In this document: positions 13,527 through 64,000 of the stretch, piece by piece | Layout: the number at the start of each line of letters is the position of its first letter | How positions within the stretch are numbered: position 1 is the stretch's first letter | DNA from: Rhodosorus marinus CCMP1338 | Lineage: Eukaryota > Plantae > Rhodophyta | NCBI GenBank assembly: GCA_029953675.1 | Contig: JAMWBK010000005.1 | Location: 2,418,001 to 2,482,000 of the forward strand | Length of the DNA: 64,000 nucleotides | Direction: 5' to 3' | Notes under the pieces: model-generated | Seen by the model: only the letters and a program-made list of their open reading frames with translations | Databases searched by the model: none | Told to the model about the DNA's origin: nothing | Position numbers and translations under genes: made by a program

Positions 13527-15128
13527 CTACATGAATCGACAGTCCGAAATATCTGTTACATTCCCCCGCAGCGGGCTAACATCAGCTCGGCCCGTCGACC
13601 TCGATGGTTGTGGCCTCATGACACGAGAATCCATTGCACGGACAGCCCGTCGTACAGCCTCCCGAAGAAGCATATCGTTGTCTTCGCTTAAGTTCTCGAA
13701 AGCTTCTGGATAGATAATATCCCTTGGGTCCGTGACCGACTCATCAAAAAGGACGCGAACTGAAAGACAAGTAACTTTGGAACCAAAGTTTCCCCGCCAG
13801 AACCTATGATCTTTTCCCCGCGCAACAACAAGAGCGAAGTGCGCCCCATCAGTGGGCTCGAATACATGCCGAACGCCATCCCAATAGTCTGCGGGAGCAG
13901 CAAGTACACCGGATGAGAACGAATTGAGAATCCTGCCCTCAGAATCCAAAATGCAGGCGACCAGCTCAAAGACGGAAGGACAGTCCGTTCTAGCCATGTA
14001 CTTCGCTGAAACTTCTACGCAGATGTCGCTAGGATGTACTACAAATTTTCGGAGATTGACACCCTGCACCATTGTACACCATTGAAAAGAGCTTACAAAA
14101 TTGGTCCTCGAATTGAAAATCGGCAGGTCTGAATACTCGATCTGCCACGCTGCTCCCGATAGCGACTTCCAGCCTCGCAGCTGATGAGAACCATCTGAAT
14201 TGAAGATCATGTTTGGAGAGCCTCTCTCATACCTGGATATACTGCTTGATCCTACTGGATCGGATTCACACCAACCGCAGTACAGGAGCTGCTCATTTTC
14301 GGGCTCTGGACCATTGCTATGTCTCTCTTTCCCTGGATCCATCGCTAACGAACATGAGCTGCGACCTGGACACGGTATGGCTTGCAATTTTTCCTTTCGC
14401 TCCCGGTTGCTGTTCCGATCATGGCACGCTTTGCAAAAGTGGGTACTCCCATAGCAGACATAAGTCGCGGTGGAGCAGCAGTACCTGCATTTCCAGACGT
14501 AGAAGCCGCGATGGCTCGCCTCGCCACATATAATAGCACCTCTTGAGTTGCATTTCGTACACATTCTGTCACTGGCAGGCAGATCTCTCTCCTCGGCGTC
14601 TGCGCAAGCAACGGTCCCCCCAAAGTATGGTTCCTCGCATACGGAGCACAAGTAGAAAGCGTAGATGTGCCGTCCGTAGTCCAATAGCTTTCCGTAATAG
14701 GCCCCCCCCACCGTTGTTACAGTTGAGGATTTGTCCAGCTCATCCACCTTTGCCTGTTCGAGAATCATCGCGTCAACCTTTGCCCTCAGAGCAGTCACAT
14801 TACGAAGAACGTCGTTCAATGCCTCATGTTCACAGAACTTTCCACACTGTGCGCACGAGCAACCAGTGAACAGTAACCTCCTACGCGGGTTCGGCTGAGC
14901 CAGTTGCAGCTGACTCTTCAAACAATCCAGATGCCAGATATGACCACAACTGAGCTCAATGCAGGGCTCTTCATCCAGAGCATCCAGGCAAATCGCACAG
15001 TCATCTTTACCACTCTGAAACCTGCTCCTACTTACACACCCTTCCACTAGACACGACACATGAGTCGTCTCACCAGCGTACCCGTTACAGTCATGCCCGC
15101 AGTCCAACTTCACCCCGCACTTCTCCAT
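13527..15128 (-). CDS. MYCBP2/PHR-type RING-Cys-Relay E3 ubiquitin ligase fused to an FBA (Fbs1-like glycan-binding) domain; intronless
   Basis: RING-H2 CAIC...CGHIWHLDC...CAQC. Tandem-Cys domain YAFYLCSVCEEPYFGGTVACAD and WKCRYCCSTATYVCYGSTHFCKACH, highly similar to the MYCBP2 C-terminus. Followed by FBA motifs FVSSFQWC, ARTDC..FEL and GKDHRFWRGNFGSKV. The likely start is MEKCG at 15128. Confidence 0.9.
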   Translation of the reverse strand: MEKCGVKLDCGHDCNGYAGETTHVSCLVEGCVSRSRFQSGKDDCAICLDALDEEPCIELSCGHIWHLDCLKSQLQLAQPNPRRRLLFTGCSCAQCGKFCEHEALNDVLRNVTALRAKVDAMILEQAKVDELDKSSTVTTVGGAYYGKLLDYGRHIYAFYLCSVCEEPYFGGTVACADAEERDLPASDRMCTKCNSRGAIICGEASHRGFYVWKCRYCCSTATYVCYGSTHFCKACHDRNSNRERKEKLQAIPCPGRSSCSLAMDPGKERHSNGPEPENEQLLYCGWCESDPVGSSSISRYERGSPNMIFNSDGSHQLRGWKSLSGAAWQIEYSDLPIFNSRTNFVSSFQWCTMVQGVNLRKFVVHPSDICVEVSAKYMARTDCPSVFELVACILDSEGRILNSFSSGVLAAPADYWDGVRHVFEPTDGAHFALVVARGKDHRFWRGNFGSKVTCLSVRVLFDESVTDPRDIIYPEAFENLSEDNDMLLREAVRRAVRAMDSRVMRPQPSRSTGRADVSPLRGNVTDISDCRFM

Positions 15129-15739
15129 TTGAACCCCCTCAAAACAAAAACCCACGCTCCAACAACAAGCGAGCAAAAACAGGCAACTTCTTCGGAAAAA
15201 AAATAGTAAACAACCACACTCCCTCACTCAAACAATATGTACACTTTCCACTCTCTGTTATCTAAGAACTCCTCCGTTCTCAGCCTTCCCCTTCCTCCCC
15301 ACCATCAACAAAACCCTCCAAAACACCCTCCCCCTACCCCGTCCTTCAACTCGTCCTGACACGGTCACAGCACCCTCCGACACAACAACTTCCCATTTAT
15401 AGAAACTTCTGCAGCGTTTCCATTTTCACTGCCCACTTTTACGATCCGATTCTGGCACGTTCCTTAAAGCACCTACTTTAGACTTTGGCCAGCAAACTTT
15501 TGTATTCTTGGAGTCAAAAACGAATCGAAAACCACGTATTGGATGCAGCGGTGGTAGGTACCTGACATTATTTAAGTACTTCCAAGACAAAAATTGAAAT
15601 GTCGATGAGTCGTTTTGTTTGTTTGTTTTTCAAAAAGGTGTACACGATGGAGTATATTCGACCGTTCCATACTAAAAGTAGGTAAAATAATGTGATATTC
15701 AGAACAAATATGATAGAAGTGGGGGGCGAAGATGTTCGC

Positions 15740-16613: not shown

Positions 16614-18068
16614 CTACGATCCAAACCCGAACGAAAAGCCTGACGAAGGCTCTGATGCGTTGTGTCGCTTTGTACAAGCACTCTCTGTCGTACTGTCTTC
16701 GTCCAAGTTCCGTTTTAACCTGCCCCACAGGGAAGTCCTGCTCAGTTTCGCCTCTGCTGCTTCCAAGACTTCTGGATAGGCTTCACGAATGGACTCGCAG
16801 AGCTCAGCATCTAACCGCTCTGCGCTTATCTGGACACCGCTGAGGTGATCTGGGTGCTCTCGAAGAAGTCTCAGAACATGCGGAAGCGCATTCCTGGTCA
16901 CGAAATTCTGCGTAATTGCCACGGTCTCCTCGAGGTTCAAAACGATATGCCACCAGCCCCTCGGTACGTAAAGTACCTCACCCGCAATCGTCGTACACTG
17001 AACAAGCTGTGGGTGGTCCACGATCATGTCAAAAAAGTTGAGGAACCATTCCATTGCCGACATTGGCCCGACAACCGATCCACCGTCCGCAGATGGTTGA
17101 ATTCCAGGCGGCGGGCCAGCCCCGGGCGGTAGCATTAGCCACCGCTTTGAGCCTCTAACTACCCCGTTCCAAGCGCTCGTTTCGTTCGGGTCCTTGTGAA
17201 AGGAAGATCCGGACCGCCTCCCGCCAATGATCAGCCATCGCCAATCGGGATGGAAGGATTCCGGTAGAAGTGAAAAGAAGTCTTTTCCATAGCATTCTGG
17301 AGAGCTGTATGCTTCAGCGACTTCCGGTAGATTCTCGGCAAACTGTTTGTCGAACAAGTACAAAGGCTGATCATCCACTACAGAGTCCATGTAATCAAAG
17401 TACTCCGGCAAGGAGAACAGGAAACCACCTGCATTCACCCTTTTTGAGGGATCGCATTTCGAGATCAGCCACTCCCTACTCCAAGAACCTCCTGTACGGG
17501 TCTTCCAATCCTTCAGGATGAACGGACGATTGCTTTCATCAAACAGTGTTGTAAAGTGATCTTCTGAGAAGTCGTCGATCGGAAATCTTTCTACGTTGTC
17601 ACCCGAGAGCCACTTTGGGCTTATTCCGGCGGAGGCACAGTGCCAGGAGTGGAAAAGGACGTCAGAGTATACATCGTTGAGCCTCAACCACAATCGAGTA
17701 TCCAACTCTACTCCAACCTTCAGCTTCTCCAAGGTCATCTCTCTGTAGGTTGCCTTCCACGACCCGCCCACAATTCTCAGCTTGCTCGTCTCCTCTCGAC
17801 TCAGGACGTGCTTCCTCCACAAGTCTTCTTCGGACGCGAGCGCGTAGAAGAAGCGCGATAGCTGGCTGCACCGCGCGAGTGAATCAGGGTCAAGCAGACC
17901 CAAAATTTGCAGTATCTGCCCATCCTCCAAAACTGCGAGACGGCCCAGACCCTGAACTCTGGTTCGCTCTGCTTCGTTCAGCTTGTTCCTCGCCAGTGCG
18001 TCTCCAAGCGGCCTCACGCCAAGGGGGTGACTTCCCCGCTCGAGTACCTGATCTACATCACCCGTCAT
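16614..18068 (-). CDS. F-box + JmjC (JMJD6-like) 2-oxoglutarate/Fe oxygenase; intronless
   Basis: HPLGVRP N-terminus, F-box-like LAVLEDGQILQILGLLD..L..SQLSRFFY..EDLWR, then PLYLFD, SSFHKDPNETSAWN (HxD) and VPRGWWHIVLNLEET (distal His). Confidence 0.9.
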   Translation of the reverse strand: MTGDVDQVLERGSHPLGVRPLGDALARNKLNEAERTRVQGLGRLAVLEDGQILQILGLLDPDSLARCSQLSRFFYALASEEDLWRKHVLSREETSKLRIVGGSWKATYREMTLEKLKVGVELDTRLWLRLNDVYSDVLFHSWHCASAGISPKWLSGDNVERFPIDDFSEDHFTTLFDESNRPFILKDWKTRTGGSWSREWLISKCDPSKRVNAGGFLFSLPEYFDYMDSVVDDQPLYLFDKQFAENLPEVAEAYSSPECYGKDFFSLLPESFHPDWRWLIIGGRRSGSSFHKDPNETSAWNGVVRGSKRWLMLPPGAGPPPGIQPSADGGSVVGPMSAMEWFLNFFDMIVDHPQLVQCTTIAGEVLYVPRGWWHIVLNLEETVAITQNFVTRNALPHVLRLLREHPDHLSGVQISAERLDAELCESIREAYPEVLEAAEAKLSRTSLWGRLKRNLDEDSTTESACTKRHNASEPSSGFSFGFGS

Positions 18069-34522: not shown

Positions 34523-35417
34523 TCAAAAGTCATACTTTGCCTCAATGAACCGGGTCAATCCTCGTGCAGTATTGAACGCGACAACTTCAATTCCTTCCTC
34601 AGGCTCAATACCGATCTTAACGTCCGCCTGCTCGTACAGGGATTCCCTCTCTCTCAGGATTGATTCAATCATTGCCTTCGGGTCATCCACCTTAAGAAGC
34701 GGTCTCGAAGCATCTCCTTTCACACGTTCATAAATGGTTTCCACTGAAGGATCTAACCAGACTACTAATCCATTCTAATCAGGAAAGCAAAGACGATCGT
34801 GAATCAAGCAGCACTAAACCCGCGGAATCCATTTGTCCATGTCGGATATCGTAAGGGACTCAACCCACCTGCATATGGCCCCAATTCTCCTGGTTAAGGA
34901 CTGCTCCGCCACCAGCAGATACTACCGTTCTTACGTATGGAGATACCTGCTGAATCACAACGGATTCAACTTGCCGAAAACCAGCTTCACCGTGTTCTTC
35001 GAAGATATCTGTAATCGGCATTTTCATACTCTCCTGAATTACCTCGTCTGTGTCTATATAAGCATACCTGAGAGATGGATGAAGTTTGCTAAGATCAGCC
35101 GGATTAAACTTTGGAGAAAAAGATTGTAACCAGTTTTTGTACCCTATTTGCTGTGCCAGAACCTTTCCAACAGCTGATTTTCCAGATCCCATCATGCCGA
35201 TCATGAAGATGCTGACTCCCTTGAGCATCTCCTTCAGCTGAACATACTCCTGCGGCTGCTTATTCACGTCAACCGCATCTTTAGACCCTTCCGAAGGAAA
35301 TTTGGTCACATCAACGTTCGCCCTCGCAACCAAGCGTCTCCTCCCACACCTACTTGCTGCAGCTCTCCTACTATGGAGAACACTTGTCCCACTTCCAGGA
35401 GCTAAGAATCCAAACAT
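34523..35417 (-). CDS. aroK: Shikimate kinase, plastid-targeted
   Basis: P-loop IGMMGSGKS, YIDTD, FEEHGEAGFRQVE, SAGGGAV and RPLL...ERESLYEQAD. Transit peptide MFGFLAP. Confidence 0.92.
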
Positions 35418-54185: not shown

Positions 54186-55060
54186 CTAGTGGGACTTTAG
54201 AAGCAGAATTCCTTTGTCCCCAGGGTACGGGTACCTTTCGAGATCGAAAGCCTCCCGGACATGTTCCGGGACGAATCTTCCTCCAAGGTAGTGTGCTCCT
54301 TCGAAGTTCTGCACAGCAGCCTGGGAAAGGTGAAGTTTGCCGATGTTGAGAATGAGGGAGGAAATATAATTAAGAGTACAGGGCACAGGTATTCGCTGAC
54401 CTTGGGTGCTGTCAATGAAATCACGCAATCTGGGTTCTCAATCCTGACGGAACCTTGATCATGTTCCTTGCCGTCCACATCCCAGCCAGATGGCACATCT
54501 ACACAGACAACTTTCGAACTCTGTTGGGAGTTGATCGACGAGATGACCTCTCGAAAGGGGTCTCGGACACTGCCCTTAAAGCTAAACCCGAAAATCGAGT
54601 CCAAGATTACATCGGCGGGGGTAAACTCTGATACAAACTCAATGTTTTCGGCGTCTAGCTGTTTCCGCAACTTCGAATAGTGTTCGTTCCTTCCCTGTTT
54701 GGGGTACAGAACTTGCACCTTGTACCCGAACTGCTTCAAATGTCTCGCAGCGACAAGACCATCACCACCGTTATTCCCCGGTCCCGCGACGACAATGACG
54801 CTACAGTCCGGGGACTTGACGAAGTCAACGACTGCTTGTGCGACGGCAAGACCAGCCAACTCCATCAACTGCTCAAGTGTGAAGCCAACCTCAGCTCCCA
54901 TCAAGCTCTCGTCGACTGCTGCAGCGGTCTCAGCATTGAGATACTTCATCGAGCGCAGAACCGCTAGCTTTCGGGAGACGTGCCTTATACTTTGCGCACC
55001 GGCACGGTGCCTTTGAAATTTGCTCAGCCGTGATATCCCGAATTCCGCAAATCCAATCAT
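54186..55060 (-). CDS. NAXE: NAD(P)HX epimerase (YjeF N-terminal), organelle presequence, 1 intron
   Basis: LEQLMELAGLAVA, GPGNNGGDGLVAARHL, DSIFGFSF, VDVPSGWDV, ISLTAPK and HYLGGRFVP. Confidence 0.95.
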
Positions 55061-55498
55061 GCTCCTGCATCTCACCGATGGTACGTTCCCCAAGTCCGCA
55101 GTGATCAGCTGTCCAATGCAAATGCTGTGTCATGAGCCGCGAAGATGGTTTGACCATGGTAGATATCAAGCAAATGTCCCGATGGGAAGCGGCGATGGTA
55201 CGCGATACCGGATTGGATGACTTCTGTGGGTACTCTGCAATCAGATTTTGGAAATTGGAGCACCTGCACTACTACTTGGGGTACCGATACGCAAGAGAGC
55301 GGCTGGATTTGATACCAATCAAGAGATTGGACGGGTGCATGATACTAAAAACTTAAGTTTGTCTAGAGTAGTCTTCTAGAGGCCGGTTAGTTCGTCGTTC
55401 GAACGCGAGGGTCCTTTGTTAAGCACTCGGGCCCCAGAAAATAGAGGACACTGCAGCTTAACAGACGCAGTATCTCCGAAGTCGAACATGTACTCTAT

Positions 55499-62432: not shown

Positions 62433-64000
62433 TCAATCAGTCTTCTTCTCAAACCTTTTGAGCACTGGGTCGACGAATTTCTCCTCCTCCCTCTTCGGTT
62501 TCGCCTGCTCTTTTCTTTCCTGAAGAGCCTTTCTGATGCTGTCGGACATAGACGAGAGGCACTTTAGCTGACCCGTGGACGAGCGCGGGGGAAAGAAGCC
62601 ATATGCTGGGGAAACCGAGCCTAGTCATCCCTGTCGCCGCATACCTTTCGGACTTTTCATCCACAACGTTATGTTGCTTCCTCCTCAACCTCTTTGCGAT
62701 CTTGTTTCTTCCTCGCGTCTTCTTCTTCTGCAAACTCTTGGCCCGCTGCGCCCTCTCAGCCTCTTTCTTCCTCAGTTGTATATCCTTCAATCTCTCGGCA
62801 GGATCCTTGTCAATACCTCCAATGCTCGTCGGGTCAAGCGATATGGTTTCAGGTTGCAACTTCTCCATCAGAGACCGAACCTCACGTTGGCGGCGTTGCT
62901 TAGACGTTTCAAACGGATTCGGAAGGGATGAGTCAAAATTCGCGACACCGGCTCCGGGTACGATCATATTGCAAAATCCTGTATGAACCGGATCACACGC
63001 CGTGAAACAAAAAAAATTAAGCAAACGATTCCCAACATGGGTTTGACATGGACGTTGGAAATGGTTGTCCTCGTCATGTACACCAGCTCTCAGATGACGT
63101 TACTCAGCTGTTCACTCCTCGAAAAATTCCTTCTTCTTGGTGAGGATCGGATCATGTACTTATCACGGTAAAGGAGCTTCCCGTTGCTTATCGAAAGTGG
63201 CAGATGGACCACATTGAAAGCATACTGGGTGAACATGCTTGAGCATCGCAACATACGATCCAGATGAGCATTCCACACGCAGCCGAACGACGCCGTGGAA
63301 CGACTCTGTCGGTGTTCCGACCCATCGAGTAAACAACGAACGCCTCGTCCAGCTTGATACAGATACATGTCCATTTTGCGCTCCCCGAAAAGAAGGAAAA
63401 CTGAAGAGTGCACTATAGAGTACTGCCAGTCCAAGCTGGTTTCACAGAGTATTGTTTGACTAGTTGTTTTCGTTTGGCAAGTCTGTCCCTACCTTTCGAG
63501 TGGGAAACTCCAAGAACATCTTCATACGGACAAAACGAAAGACTTTCAACCACCTTTCCAGGATACAGATTCTCCATGTAAGGAGCTCCTATTGTCGATT
63601 CGGAAAAGATGTCCTTATAGAGCTTAACGTTTGGACCAAAGCTCAGAGCAAGGAGGTTTCTTTGAGAGAATATCGATCTGTTCGCAGCGACCGGAAGTCG
63701 TATACTATGTTGTTGCGAAGTAGCAAATTAAGATGAGTGCATGGTTAAGAATTGCTATTGAAAATGTTTAGAGTTGTGGATAAGCAGGACTTACCAGTTG
63801 AGTTTCTTGTATGTTCTAAGATCATAAATATTACAATATGCGTCTGATCCCGAGGTCAGCATGTATGTGCCATCCCGTGTGATAGCAATGGAGTTGATGG
63901 ATCCGCGGTTTGCTAGGATCCTCACCAAAGGTTCGCTTGAGATAGGGCTCCATAGAGCTACTGTTCCATTGGAATGACCAGTAGCGATACAGGCGTTGAA
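62433..64000 (-). CDS. UTP7: UTP7/WDR46 U3 snoRNP WD-repeat protein, 3' portion (5' end outside the window)
   Basis: BING4CT-like IVPGAGVANFDS..NPFETSKQRRQREVRSLMEKLQPETISLDP, basic tail KKKTRGRNK and terminal DPVLKRFEKK. Confidence 0.9.

Follow-up and report, generated by a model that had tools for sequence, protein, structure and literature searches.

A compact RING-Cys-Relay protein with an FBA domain in the red alga Rhodosorus marinus: a candidate glycan-directed ubiquitin ligase

In the RING-Cys-Relay (RCR) mechanism described for MYCBP2, the RING recruits a UBCH5-type E2 charged with ubiquitin, which is passed to an upstream cysteine, from there to a downstream cysteine and finally to hydroxyl groups; of these, threonine is favoured, though even glycerol can serve as an acceptor (PMC9120709, PMC7615817). 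His4583 of MYCBP2 is essential in this transfer to hydroxyls (PMC7615817). A second group of ubiquitylation factors reads sugars through an FBA domain. In Fbs1, the residues F177, Y279 and W280 contact GlcNAc-GlcNAc and are required for sugar binding (PMC4603797; for Y279 and W280 also PMC12904710), and in the FBA domains characterised to date the ligand is the chitobiose core of N-glycans rather than a glucan (PMC4603797, PMC6389600). In animals, oxyester-linked ubiquitin is formed on Nrf1/NFE2L1, both at the C6-hydroxyl of GlcNAc and at Ser/Thr residues: SCF-FBS2 recognises the glycan, and ARIH1 attaches the ubiquitin (PMC13270118). Here, we describe a gene of the red alga Rhodosorus marinus CCMP1338, located in a stretch of 64,000 nucleotides (contig JAMWBK010000005.1, positions 2,418,001 to 2,482,000 of the forward strand; hereafter the window), whose product joins an RCR module of the MYCBP2 type and an FBA domain of the Fbs1 type on one chain.

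Glycan-guided non-lysine ubiquitylation has only lately been demonstrated, in animals, where it requires the multi-subunit SCF-FBS2 together with ARIH1. To our knowledge, the only RCR ligase studied so far is the 0.5-MDa animal protein MYCBP2, and the mechanism has been seen as a speciality of animal neurons. A review from 2026 on non-canonical ubiquitylation deals with MYCBP2, HOIL-1, ARIH1/FBS2, RNF213 and DELTEX and holds nothing resembling an RCR-FBA protein. In the full-text literature (open-access papers and bioRxiv, where absence is not proof) we found no description of the RCR-FBA architecture or of RCR ligases in algae. The original prediction, made from the DNA sequence alone, knew of no described protein with this architecture. 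This stands for the open-access literature; it does not extend to databases, where such proteins are already present under automatic names, or to the RCR module, which is widely shuffled. Both domains and both chemistries are known. What is new is their combination, the apparent membrane anchoring, the phyletic home and the theme of lectins joined to RCR modules.

The RCR module and the FBA domain

The complete coding sequence (13527..15128, minus strand, on which all the protein features described below are encoded) has 533 codons from ATG to stop and no introns; it was retranslated, and its orthologues are collinear with it. Comparison of the protein with all PDB chains by phmmer gave the MYCBP2 RCR construct 5o6c (E 7.3e-34, residues 37-288 against chain positions 6-258), the MYCBP2 chain 6t7f (E 2.2e-33) and the sugar-binding domain of Fbs1/FBXO2, 1umi (E 1e-13, residues 305-458). 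A Pfam scan of the 533-residue protein found a RING and an FBA domain only. The RING models scored slightly under their cut-offs, over residues 42-76, and the FBA model PF04300 reached 63.8 bits (curated cut-off 32.4) over residues 306-459; no F-box was matched at E values up to 10. A homology search with the same protein returned 172 proteins, and the conservation counts that follow refer to the best 120 of them, all with E ≤1e-91 and nearly all carrying both RING and FBA.

The RCR module is preceded by a Cys/His motif (residues 4-31, CGVKLDCGHDCNGYAGETTHVSCLVEGC; 15036..15119) that also stands upstream of the RING in other proteins. The pattern C..LxCGHxCxGxxGExxHxxCLxxxC lies directly before the RING in the PHR/MYCBP2-type proteins P0213, P0249 and P0222, of 3,000-4,000 residues, and in the protist RCR proteins P0141, P0153 and P0184; within the FBA-bearing family it is confined to about five members of the red-alga type. 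The motif is probably an additional zinc-binding element. The RING-H2 domain (residues 44-101; 14826..14999), delimited by alignment to the MYCBP2 RING in 5o6c, would be the docking site of the ubiquitin-charged E2, and its ligands C44, C47, C61, H63, H66, C69, C92 and C95 are kept in every homologue that covers the region. It is followed by a helical linker (residues 102-155; 14664..14825), which aligns with the linker of 5o6c and is helical in the AlphaFold2 model, and by the tandem-cysteine (TC) domain (residues 156-290; 14259..14663), assigned by alignment to the MYCBP2 TC domain and by Foldseek matches to 5o6c and 6t7f. The Cys/His zinc ligands of the TC domain are invariant in all 120 homologues.

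The alignment with the PDB chains equates Cys175, in the mediator loop YFGGTVAC (14604..14606), with the upstream relay cysteine C4520 of MYCBP2, and Cys225, in TYVC (14454..14456), with the downstream, substrate-transferring C4572. The putative general base His236, in KACH (14421..14423), falls on H4583. These three residues are invariant (120/120), and so are the flanking G170 and G171 of the mediator loop. The acidic Asp187, in SDRMC (14568..14570), is the counterpart of E4534 and is Asp or Glu in 104 homologues; Phe231, the equivalent of F4578, is kept in 107. The PDB E-values and this family-wide invariance are far beyond chance.

A MYCBP2-type pre-RING segment, RING-H2, linker and TC domain had been claimed for the locus, with both relay cysteines, the histidine and the acidic residue set against C4520, C4572, H4583 and E4534. 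The match to 5o6c and the motif shared with PHR proteins bear out the first claim, and a residue-by-residue count through the alignment agrees with the second. From these sequence comparisons, it appears nearly certain that the protein has the architecture and the catalytic competence of an RCR-type enzyme.

Downstream of the TC domain lies the FBA beta-sandwich (residues 303-461; 13746..14222), identified by PF04300, by the Fbs1 match and by Foldseek, where the original prediction had put it at about 13745-14213. Phe348, in SSFQW (14085..14087), corresponds to F177, a sugar-stacking residue in Fbs1, and is Phe or Tyr in 109 homologues. The pair Phe443-Trp444 (13797..13802) corresponds to the sugar-stacking pair Y279-W280; position 443 is Phe in 107 and aromatic in 110 homologues, and Trp444 is kept in 118. 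Counting through the alignment thus returns the same sugar-contact positions that had been proposed. In the loop around T215 of Fbs1, the equivalents of R214 and D216 are each kept in 119 homologues, and that of T215 itself, Thr381, is Thr in 102. As the F-box is missing from the Pfam matches and the RCR module occupies the region N-terminal to the FBA domain, the proposed stand-alone, non-SCF architecture is also upheld. Whether the FBA domain directs the enzyme to glycans appears evenly balanced on the evidence of these contacts and of the deviations considered below.

An AlphaFold2 model built from a 77-sequence family alignment has a mean predicted local distance difference test score (pLDDT) of 85.9; in the C-terminal tail the score is about 90 up to residue 500, and only the last 28 residues (506-533) fall below 50. 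The linker helices (residues 102-129, 135-138 and 148-155) exceed 90, and residues 290-299, between the TC and FBA domains, have a pLDDT of 52. In a Foldseek search of this model against the PDB, the Fbs1 sugar-binding domains 1umh, 1umi and 2e33 came first, with template modelling (TM) scores on the target of 0.76-0.81. They were followed by MYCBP2 (5o6c, E 4e-15, and 6t7f), by the Fbs2/Skp1/Man3GlcNAc2 complex 8zuh and then by generic carbohydrate-binding modules.

The RCR-FBA family and the wider RCR cassette

The proteins of the family typically have 450-550 residues. The red algal members come from Rhodosorus, Purpureofilum, Gracilariopsis chorda and Pyropia vietnamensis, and the diatom members from Thalassiosira, Skeletonema, Cyclotella, Stephanocyclus, Fragilaria, Seminavis, Cylindrotheca, Entomoneis and Amphora; this distribution rests on the named sources, most of the environmental matches carrying no taxon. 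A neighbour-joining tree was computed from an alignment of 256 RCR modules. A single clade with 148 leaves holds all 146 FBA-bearing proteins in this tree, and its other two members are truncated fragments. Since all FBA-bearing RCR modules share this clade, the tree points to a single, ancient and maintained fusion of RCR and FBA. Within the clade, the red algal sequences stand basal to a single large group of diatoms. This would be compatible with a red algal origin and transfer to diatoms, to which we give little weight, the internal branches being short.

The tree puts the long PHR proteins and the RCR module of Rhodosorus in different clades, and we do not regard the Rhodosorus protein as a PHR orthologue, that is, as a MYCBP2/Highwire/RPM-1 protein proper. 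Automatic names in the databases are inconsistent: 'cupin-like domain-containing protein', 'E3 ubiquitin-protein ligase highwire' and 'protein ligase MYCBP2' are all in use (P0033 of Fragilaria crotonensis, P0028 of Gracilariopsis, P0077 of Seminavis), and a further one is 'F-box associated region/RING-like zinc finger'. For this family, 'highwire' and 'MYCBP2' are misleading labels, because the Rhodosorus protein has no PHR-type regions and its RCR module belongs to a different clade from that of the PHR proteins.

The RING-TC part alone (residues 37-292) was also used for an exhaustive HMMER search against 1.84 billion cluster representatives, which returned 1,263 proteins at E ≤1e-3, 708 at 1e-10 and 91 at 1e-30. 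Outside the FBA clade, most of the matching proteins have 450-1,300 residues and carry the RCR at their C-terminus. The cassette is thus common beyond the animals, in protists such as the foraminifer Nonionella, Platysulcus and Blastocystis; P0139, P0141, P0142, P0153, P0165, P0184, P0191 and P0203 are examples of such widespread RCR proteins. The partner domains include IBR (28 of the 73 proteins scanned), C2, a ubiquitin-like domain with C2 and SPRY, and Hsp70. A few proteins carry further domains behind the TC domain, in the manner of the FBA family. P0248 has IBR and RCR and, after the TC domain, a Jacalin-like lectin (45 bits); P0256 has IBR and RCR, then SUN and three F5/8-type-C discoidin domains after the TC domain; in P0124 the RCR is followed by two FBA domains. 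Folds of the lectin or carbohydrate-binding type have thus been added downstream of the RCR core on three or more separate occasions, and the distribution marks the RCR as a widely shuffled module in protists.

The C-termini of the family differ. The Rhodosorus tail (residues 462-533; 13530..13745) consists, in the AlphaFold2 model, of a confidently predicted helix at 486-503 and a disordered basic stretch, and ends in CRFM (13530..13541), a CaaX-like candidate prenylation site. The cysteine at position -4 recurs in the otherwise unalignable tails of red-alga-type relatives, which end in CRII (P0275), CNMC (P0002) and CAIM (P0005). A different end is seen in about 35 of the 120, for the most part paralogues from diatoms: some 18 hydrophobic residues after basic ones, with the consensus LPIvCFxxxxWLxx (P0016, P0019, P0022, P0036, P0043, P0051, P0078 and about 28 more), and these ends look like tail anchors. 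In the remaining homologues the chain stops shortly behind the FBA domain, and these proteins look soluble. A pair of paralogues, one of them anchored and the other soluble, seems to be present in diatoms. The CaaX-like and tail-anchor-like ends suggest membrane attachment, for which a precedent exists among FBA proteins: Fbs3/FBXO27 is N-myristoylated and endomembrane-bound, and it recognises the glycans exposed on ruptured lysosomes, which it thereby marks (PMC6389600). A SELMA/periplastid localisation of the diatom members was considered and set aside, most of them beginning directly with the RING and having no obvious leader.

Proposed mechanism and competing explanations

Considering that every element of the MYCBP2 relay is kept, we infer that the Rhodosorus protein uses the same relay. 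The RING would dock the charged E2, ubiquitin would be transthiolated to Cys175 in the glycine-hinged mediator loop and relayed from there to Cys225, and His236 would act as general base while ubiquitin is discharged onto an acceptor held near by the FBA domain. Some 15 poorly ordered residues separate the TC from the FBA domain, so that the probable glycan reader would adjoin the site of discharge. The retained Fbs1 contacts together with the membrane anchors suggest a ligase that needs no cullin and works at the cytosolic surface of endomembranes, where its CaaX end or, in many diatom paralogues, a tail anchor would hold it. Its likeliest clients would be N-glycoproteins whose glycan core is exposed to the cytosol, such as retrotranslocating substrates of endoplasmic-reticulum-associated degradation (ERAD) or glycoproteins of ruptured endomembranes, and the likeliest acceptor a hydroxyl, of Ser or Thr near the sequon and possibly of the sugar.

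In this scheme, we infer glycan binding, ester chemistry, localisation and physiological role from sequence. The whole chain is tentatively read as a membrane-parked, glycan-directed, hydroxyl-modifying single-chain RCR ligase, which we hold to be quite possible. For the preference for hydroxyl acceptors taken by itself, with its ester chemistry, the predicted active site gives about equal weight to either side. Direct ubiquitylation of sugar is improbable. The same holds for the broader proposal that an oxyester is made on the glycan or GlcNAc stump through Cys225 and His236 and that RCR cassettes with lectin-type domains behind them (FBA, Jacalin, discoidin/SUN) form an unrecognised class of carbohydrate-directed, ester-forming E3 ligases across protists.

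Several observations weigh against the membrane-parked, glycan-directed enzyme. The predicted TM score (pTM) of the AlphaFold2 model is only 0.58: the domains are confidently predicted and the mutual orientation of the FBA pocket and Cys225 is not. About two thirds of the homologues carry no anchor signal, and CRFM is a non-canonical CaaX sequence, with Arg at a1 and Phe at a2. The other points bear on the sugar and on the acceptor and are given with the competing explanations below.

As in FBXO44/FBG3, the FBA domain could recognise substrates through protein-protein contacts and not through sugars, with the RCR module active on one or more unglycosylated clients. FBG3 keeps the aromatic trio, with Tyr, Tyr and Trp at the Fbs1 sugar positions, yet it has no sugar-binding activity, because different hydrogen-bond networks in its loops reshape the pocket, so that the loops decide binding (PMC4603797); moreover, FBXO2 is reported to bind the cytosolic protein KPTN with Y279 and W280 (PMC12904710). 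The beta2-beta3 loop of the Rhodosorus domain is shorter than that of Fbs1 and has no counterpart of N159, which in Fbs1 takes part with T215 in the hydrogen-bond network shaping the pocket, the K281 equivalent (Arg445 here) varies between Gln, Ala and Arg across the family, and Cys383, at the A217 position, is like Cys170 of FBG3. Nevertheless, the change A217C is neutral in Fbs1, and it is the change of T215 to the FBG3-type Pro that lowers sugar binding there (PMC4603797); the corresponding Thr381 is the residue mostly kept in the family. The equivalents of the aromatic trio and of R214 and D216 are near-invariant across red algae and diatoms, and the presence of Jacalin and discoidin domains at the same post-TC position elsewhere fits a carbohydrate theme. 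On balance, a non-sugar receptor is held to be unlikely, though far from negligible.

A glycoprotein-directed but conventional enzyme would use lysines as acceptors, with the ubiquitin coming from Cys225 or straight from the E2, and would be a cullin-free functional analogue of SCF-Fbs1/2/3. The residues F4573, F4578 and F4586 of MYCBP2 are aromatics around the acceptor site, F4573 and F4586 lining the threonine pocket. In the Rhodosorus protein these two, the only RCR hallmarks readable from sequence in which it departs from MYCBP2, are replaced by Tyr226 (Tyr in 110 homologues) and Asn239 (Asn in 101), and the acceptor preference may for this reason depart from that of MYCBP2; the replacements could mean a shift towards lysine, towards sugars or neither. 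Other E3 ligases that form thioesters, such as ARIH1, modify lysine and hydroxyl depending on the context (PMC13270118). On the other side stand the invariant His236 and its largely conserved acidic partner, implicated in hydroxyl activation (PMC7615817), and the strict retention of both relay cysteines, which argues that relay chemistry is in use. Such conventional chemistry seems rather unlikely.

Much less probable is that the target is a carbohydrate without protein (free oligosaccharides, or storage or wall-precursor polysaccharides accessible from the cytosol), a sugar hydroxyl of which would be ubiquitylated in the manner of HOIL-1 on unbranched glucans. Red algae keep their floridean starch in the cytosol, and the polar Tyr and Asn at the acceptor site could suit a sugar. 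It is also known from HOIL-1 and ARIH1 that sugar C6-hydroxyls can accept ubiquitin (PMC13270118), and MYCBP2 forms esters with glycerol and other small hydroxyl compounds (PMC7615817). However, the characterised FBA domains read, as said above, the core of N-glycans rather than glucans. Moreover, diatoms, which hold most of the family members, have no cytosolic starch.

Gene model, surroundings and comparison with known systems

An intact reading frame of about 533 codons without introns had been predicted at 13527-15128, and this is what the sequence contains. The mechanical upstream limit of the open reading frame is a GTG at 15227. A longer, GTG-initiated reading frame of 566 residues was rejected, its extension being hydrophobic and unconserved; the ATG start agrees with the NCBI model and with the N-termini of the closest orthologues.

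The deposited NCBI model, NDN08_001714 (P0001), has 399 residues and is 100% identical to our translation except that residues 216-354 are replaced by 'IKQYI'. It assumes two introns, with a donor at about 14483 and an acceptor at about 14066, around a 15-nt micro-exon in another frame that encodes IKQYI, and it loses Cys225, His236 and the start of the FBA domain. The 139 codons removed are in frame and free of stops, and they encode 16 positions invariant in all 120 homologues: C217, C218, C225, H230, C232, C235, H236, C253, C259, H270, C284, C287, N306, N310, W320 and N343. Orthologues are collinear with the unspliced frame over 80-96% of the 533-residue query; the transcript-derived ones among them include P0002 of Purpureofilum, P0275 (MMETSP, 540 residues) and many diatom MMETSP transcripts. 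The Gracilariopsis orthologue is a single exon.

That the NCBI model is nevertheless right, so that the Rhodosorus product has neither Cys225 nor the first third of the FBA domain and is no fusion enzyme, is scarcely credible: the model exists in GenBank and its junctions use GT and AG, but it excises invariant residues, needs a micro-exon and runs against collinear orthologue transcripts and a single-exon orthologue. On these grounds, the spliced model is probably a gene-prediction error and the intronless reading is favoured. The collinear transcripts also support the placing of both domains on one transcript. In a related red alga represented in MMETSP, Transcript_9015 (P0275) encodes the full 540-residue fusion, and Transcript_9014 (P0024/P0276) is split into reading frames of 298 residues, with the RCR only, and 171 residues; the split may be an assembly frameshift or an isoform without the FBA domain.

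The upstream neighbour on the same strand (16614-18068, minus) encodes a protein of 484 residues with an F-box and a JmjC/Cupin_8 domain. Since FBA domains normally go together with an F-box, a conserved neighbourhood with this F-box gene was considered; it was rejected: the Gracilariopsis (L001) and Fragilaria (L002) orthologues have unrelated neighbours, and the proximity is taken as coincidence. Elsewhere in the window lie a YjeF_N reading frame of the NAD(P)HX epimerase type (54197-55093, minus), a shikimate-kinase fragment (34860-35417, minus) and a BING4CT/UTP7 fragment (62449-63024, minus). The last two look like exons of split genes, so that the intronless RCR-FBA gene sits amid intron-containing neighbours. 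No Rfam families or tRNAs were found in the window, and the only tandem repeat near the gene is trivial; the remainder of the window has the appearance of normal nuclear DNA in which genes are split.

The compact RCR-FBA chain offers a tractable recombinant system for asking whether the recognition of glycans is coupled to ester-forming ubiquitin transfer and whether sugars may themselves serve as acceptors. If sugar ubiquitylation proved true, it would be a natural single-chain, lectin-guided sugar ubiquitin ligase. Red algae and diatoms are primary producers of dominant ecological importance, and hardly anything is known of their ubiquitin systems; in them, the family is a candidate for cytosolic surveillance of glycoproteins (ERAD, damaged organelles). 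Beyond this family, RCR chemistry emerges as part of an ancient, modular eukaryotic toolkit, fused to IBR, Hsp70, C2/SPRY, Jacalin and discoidin domains. A further outcome is that public databases contain what is very probably a wrongly predicted model of this gene, together with automatic names that mislead.

Compared with MYCBP2, the Rhodosorus protein shares the pre-RING motif, the RING-H2, the helical linker and the TC domain, with both relay cysteines, the histidine, its acidic partner and the mediator loop hinged by two glycines. It differs in size, with 533 residues against more than 4,600, and has none of the RCC1-like, PHR, RAE1-binding, FBXO45/Skp1-binding and Myc-binding regions. 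The TC domain of MYCBP2 is C-terminal, whereas that of Rhodosorus is followed by 240 residues that carry a substrate-reading domain in cis. Tyr and Asn stand in place of F4573 and F4586, and the carriers are red algae and diatoms rather than animals.

With Fbs1/FBXO2, Fbs2/FBXO6 and Fbs3/FBXO27, the protein has in common the FBA beta-sandwich, a platform of the F177/Y279/W280 type and the R214/T215/D216 loop, and the N-myristoyl tether of Fbs3 is paralleled by the CaaX and tail-anchor-like ends of the family. In contrast to these adaptors, it has no F-box and so no Skp1/Cul1/Rbx1 scaffold, its catalytic module being on the same chain; its beta2-beta3 loop is shorter, K281 is unconserved and sugar binding is a prediction only.

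A functional parallel to the proposed enzyme is SCF-FBS2 with ARIH1, which likewise combines an FBA glycan reader with a thioester-forming E3 ligase capable of oxyester bonds. There, the work is divided between a neddylated cullin complex and a RING-between-RING (RBR) ligase acting in trans, whereas here a single RCR chain is predicted to perform both tasks. HOIL-1 (RBCK1), an RBR ligase with a Cys-His active site, esterifies ubiquitin to Ser/Thr and to glucosaccharides, and the Rhodosorus protein is a candidate for the same direction towards hydroxyls or sugars; the RBR catalytic fold of HOIL-1 is unrelated, and HOIL-1 has no lectin domain of its own. Finally, the plant F-box/Nictaba and F-box/Jacalin proteins also fuse a cytosolic lectin to a ubiquitin-ligase module (PMC6389600), an evolutionary habit with which the Jacalin-bearing P0248 may be compared. 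They use other lectin folds, and their ligase part is an F-box adaptor, whereas the RCR-FBA protein of Rhodosorus appears to be a self-contained enzyme.

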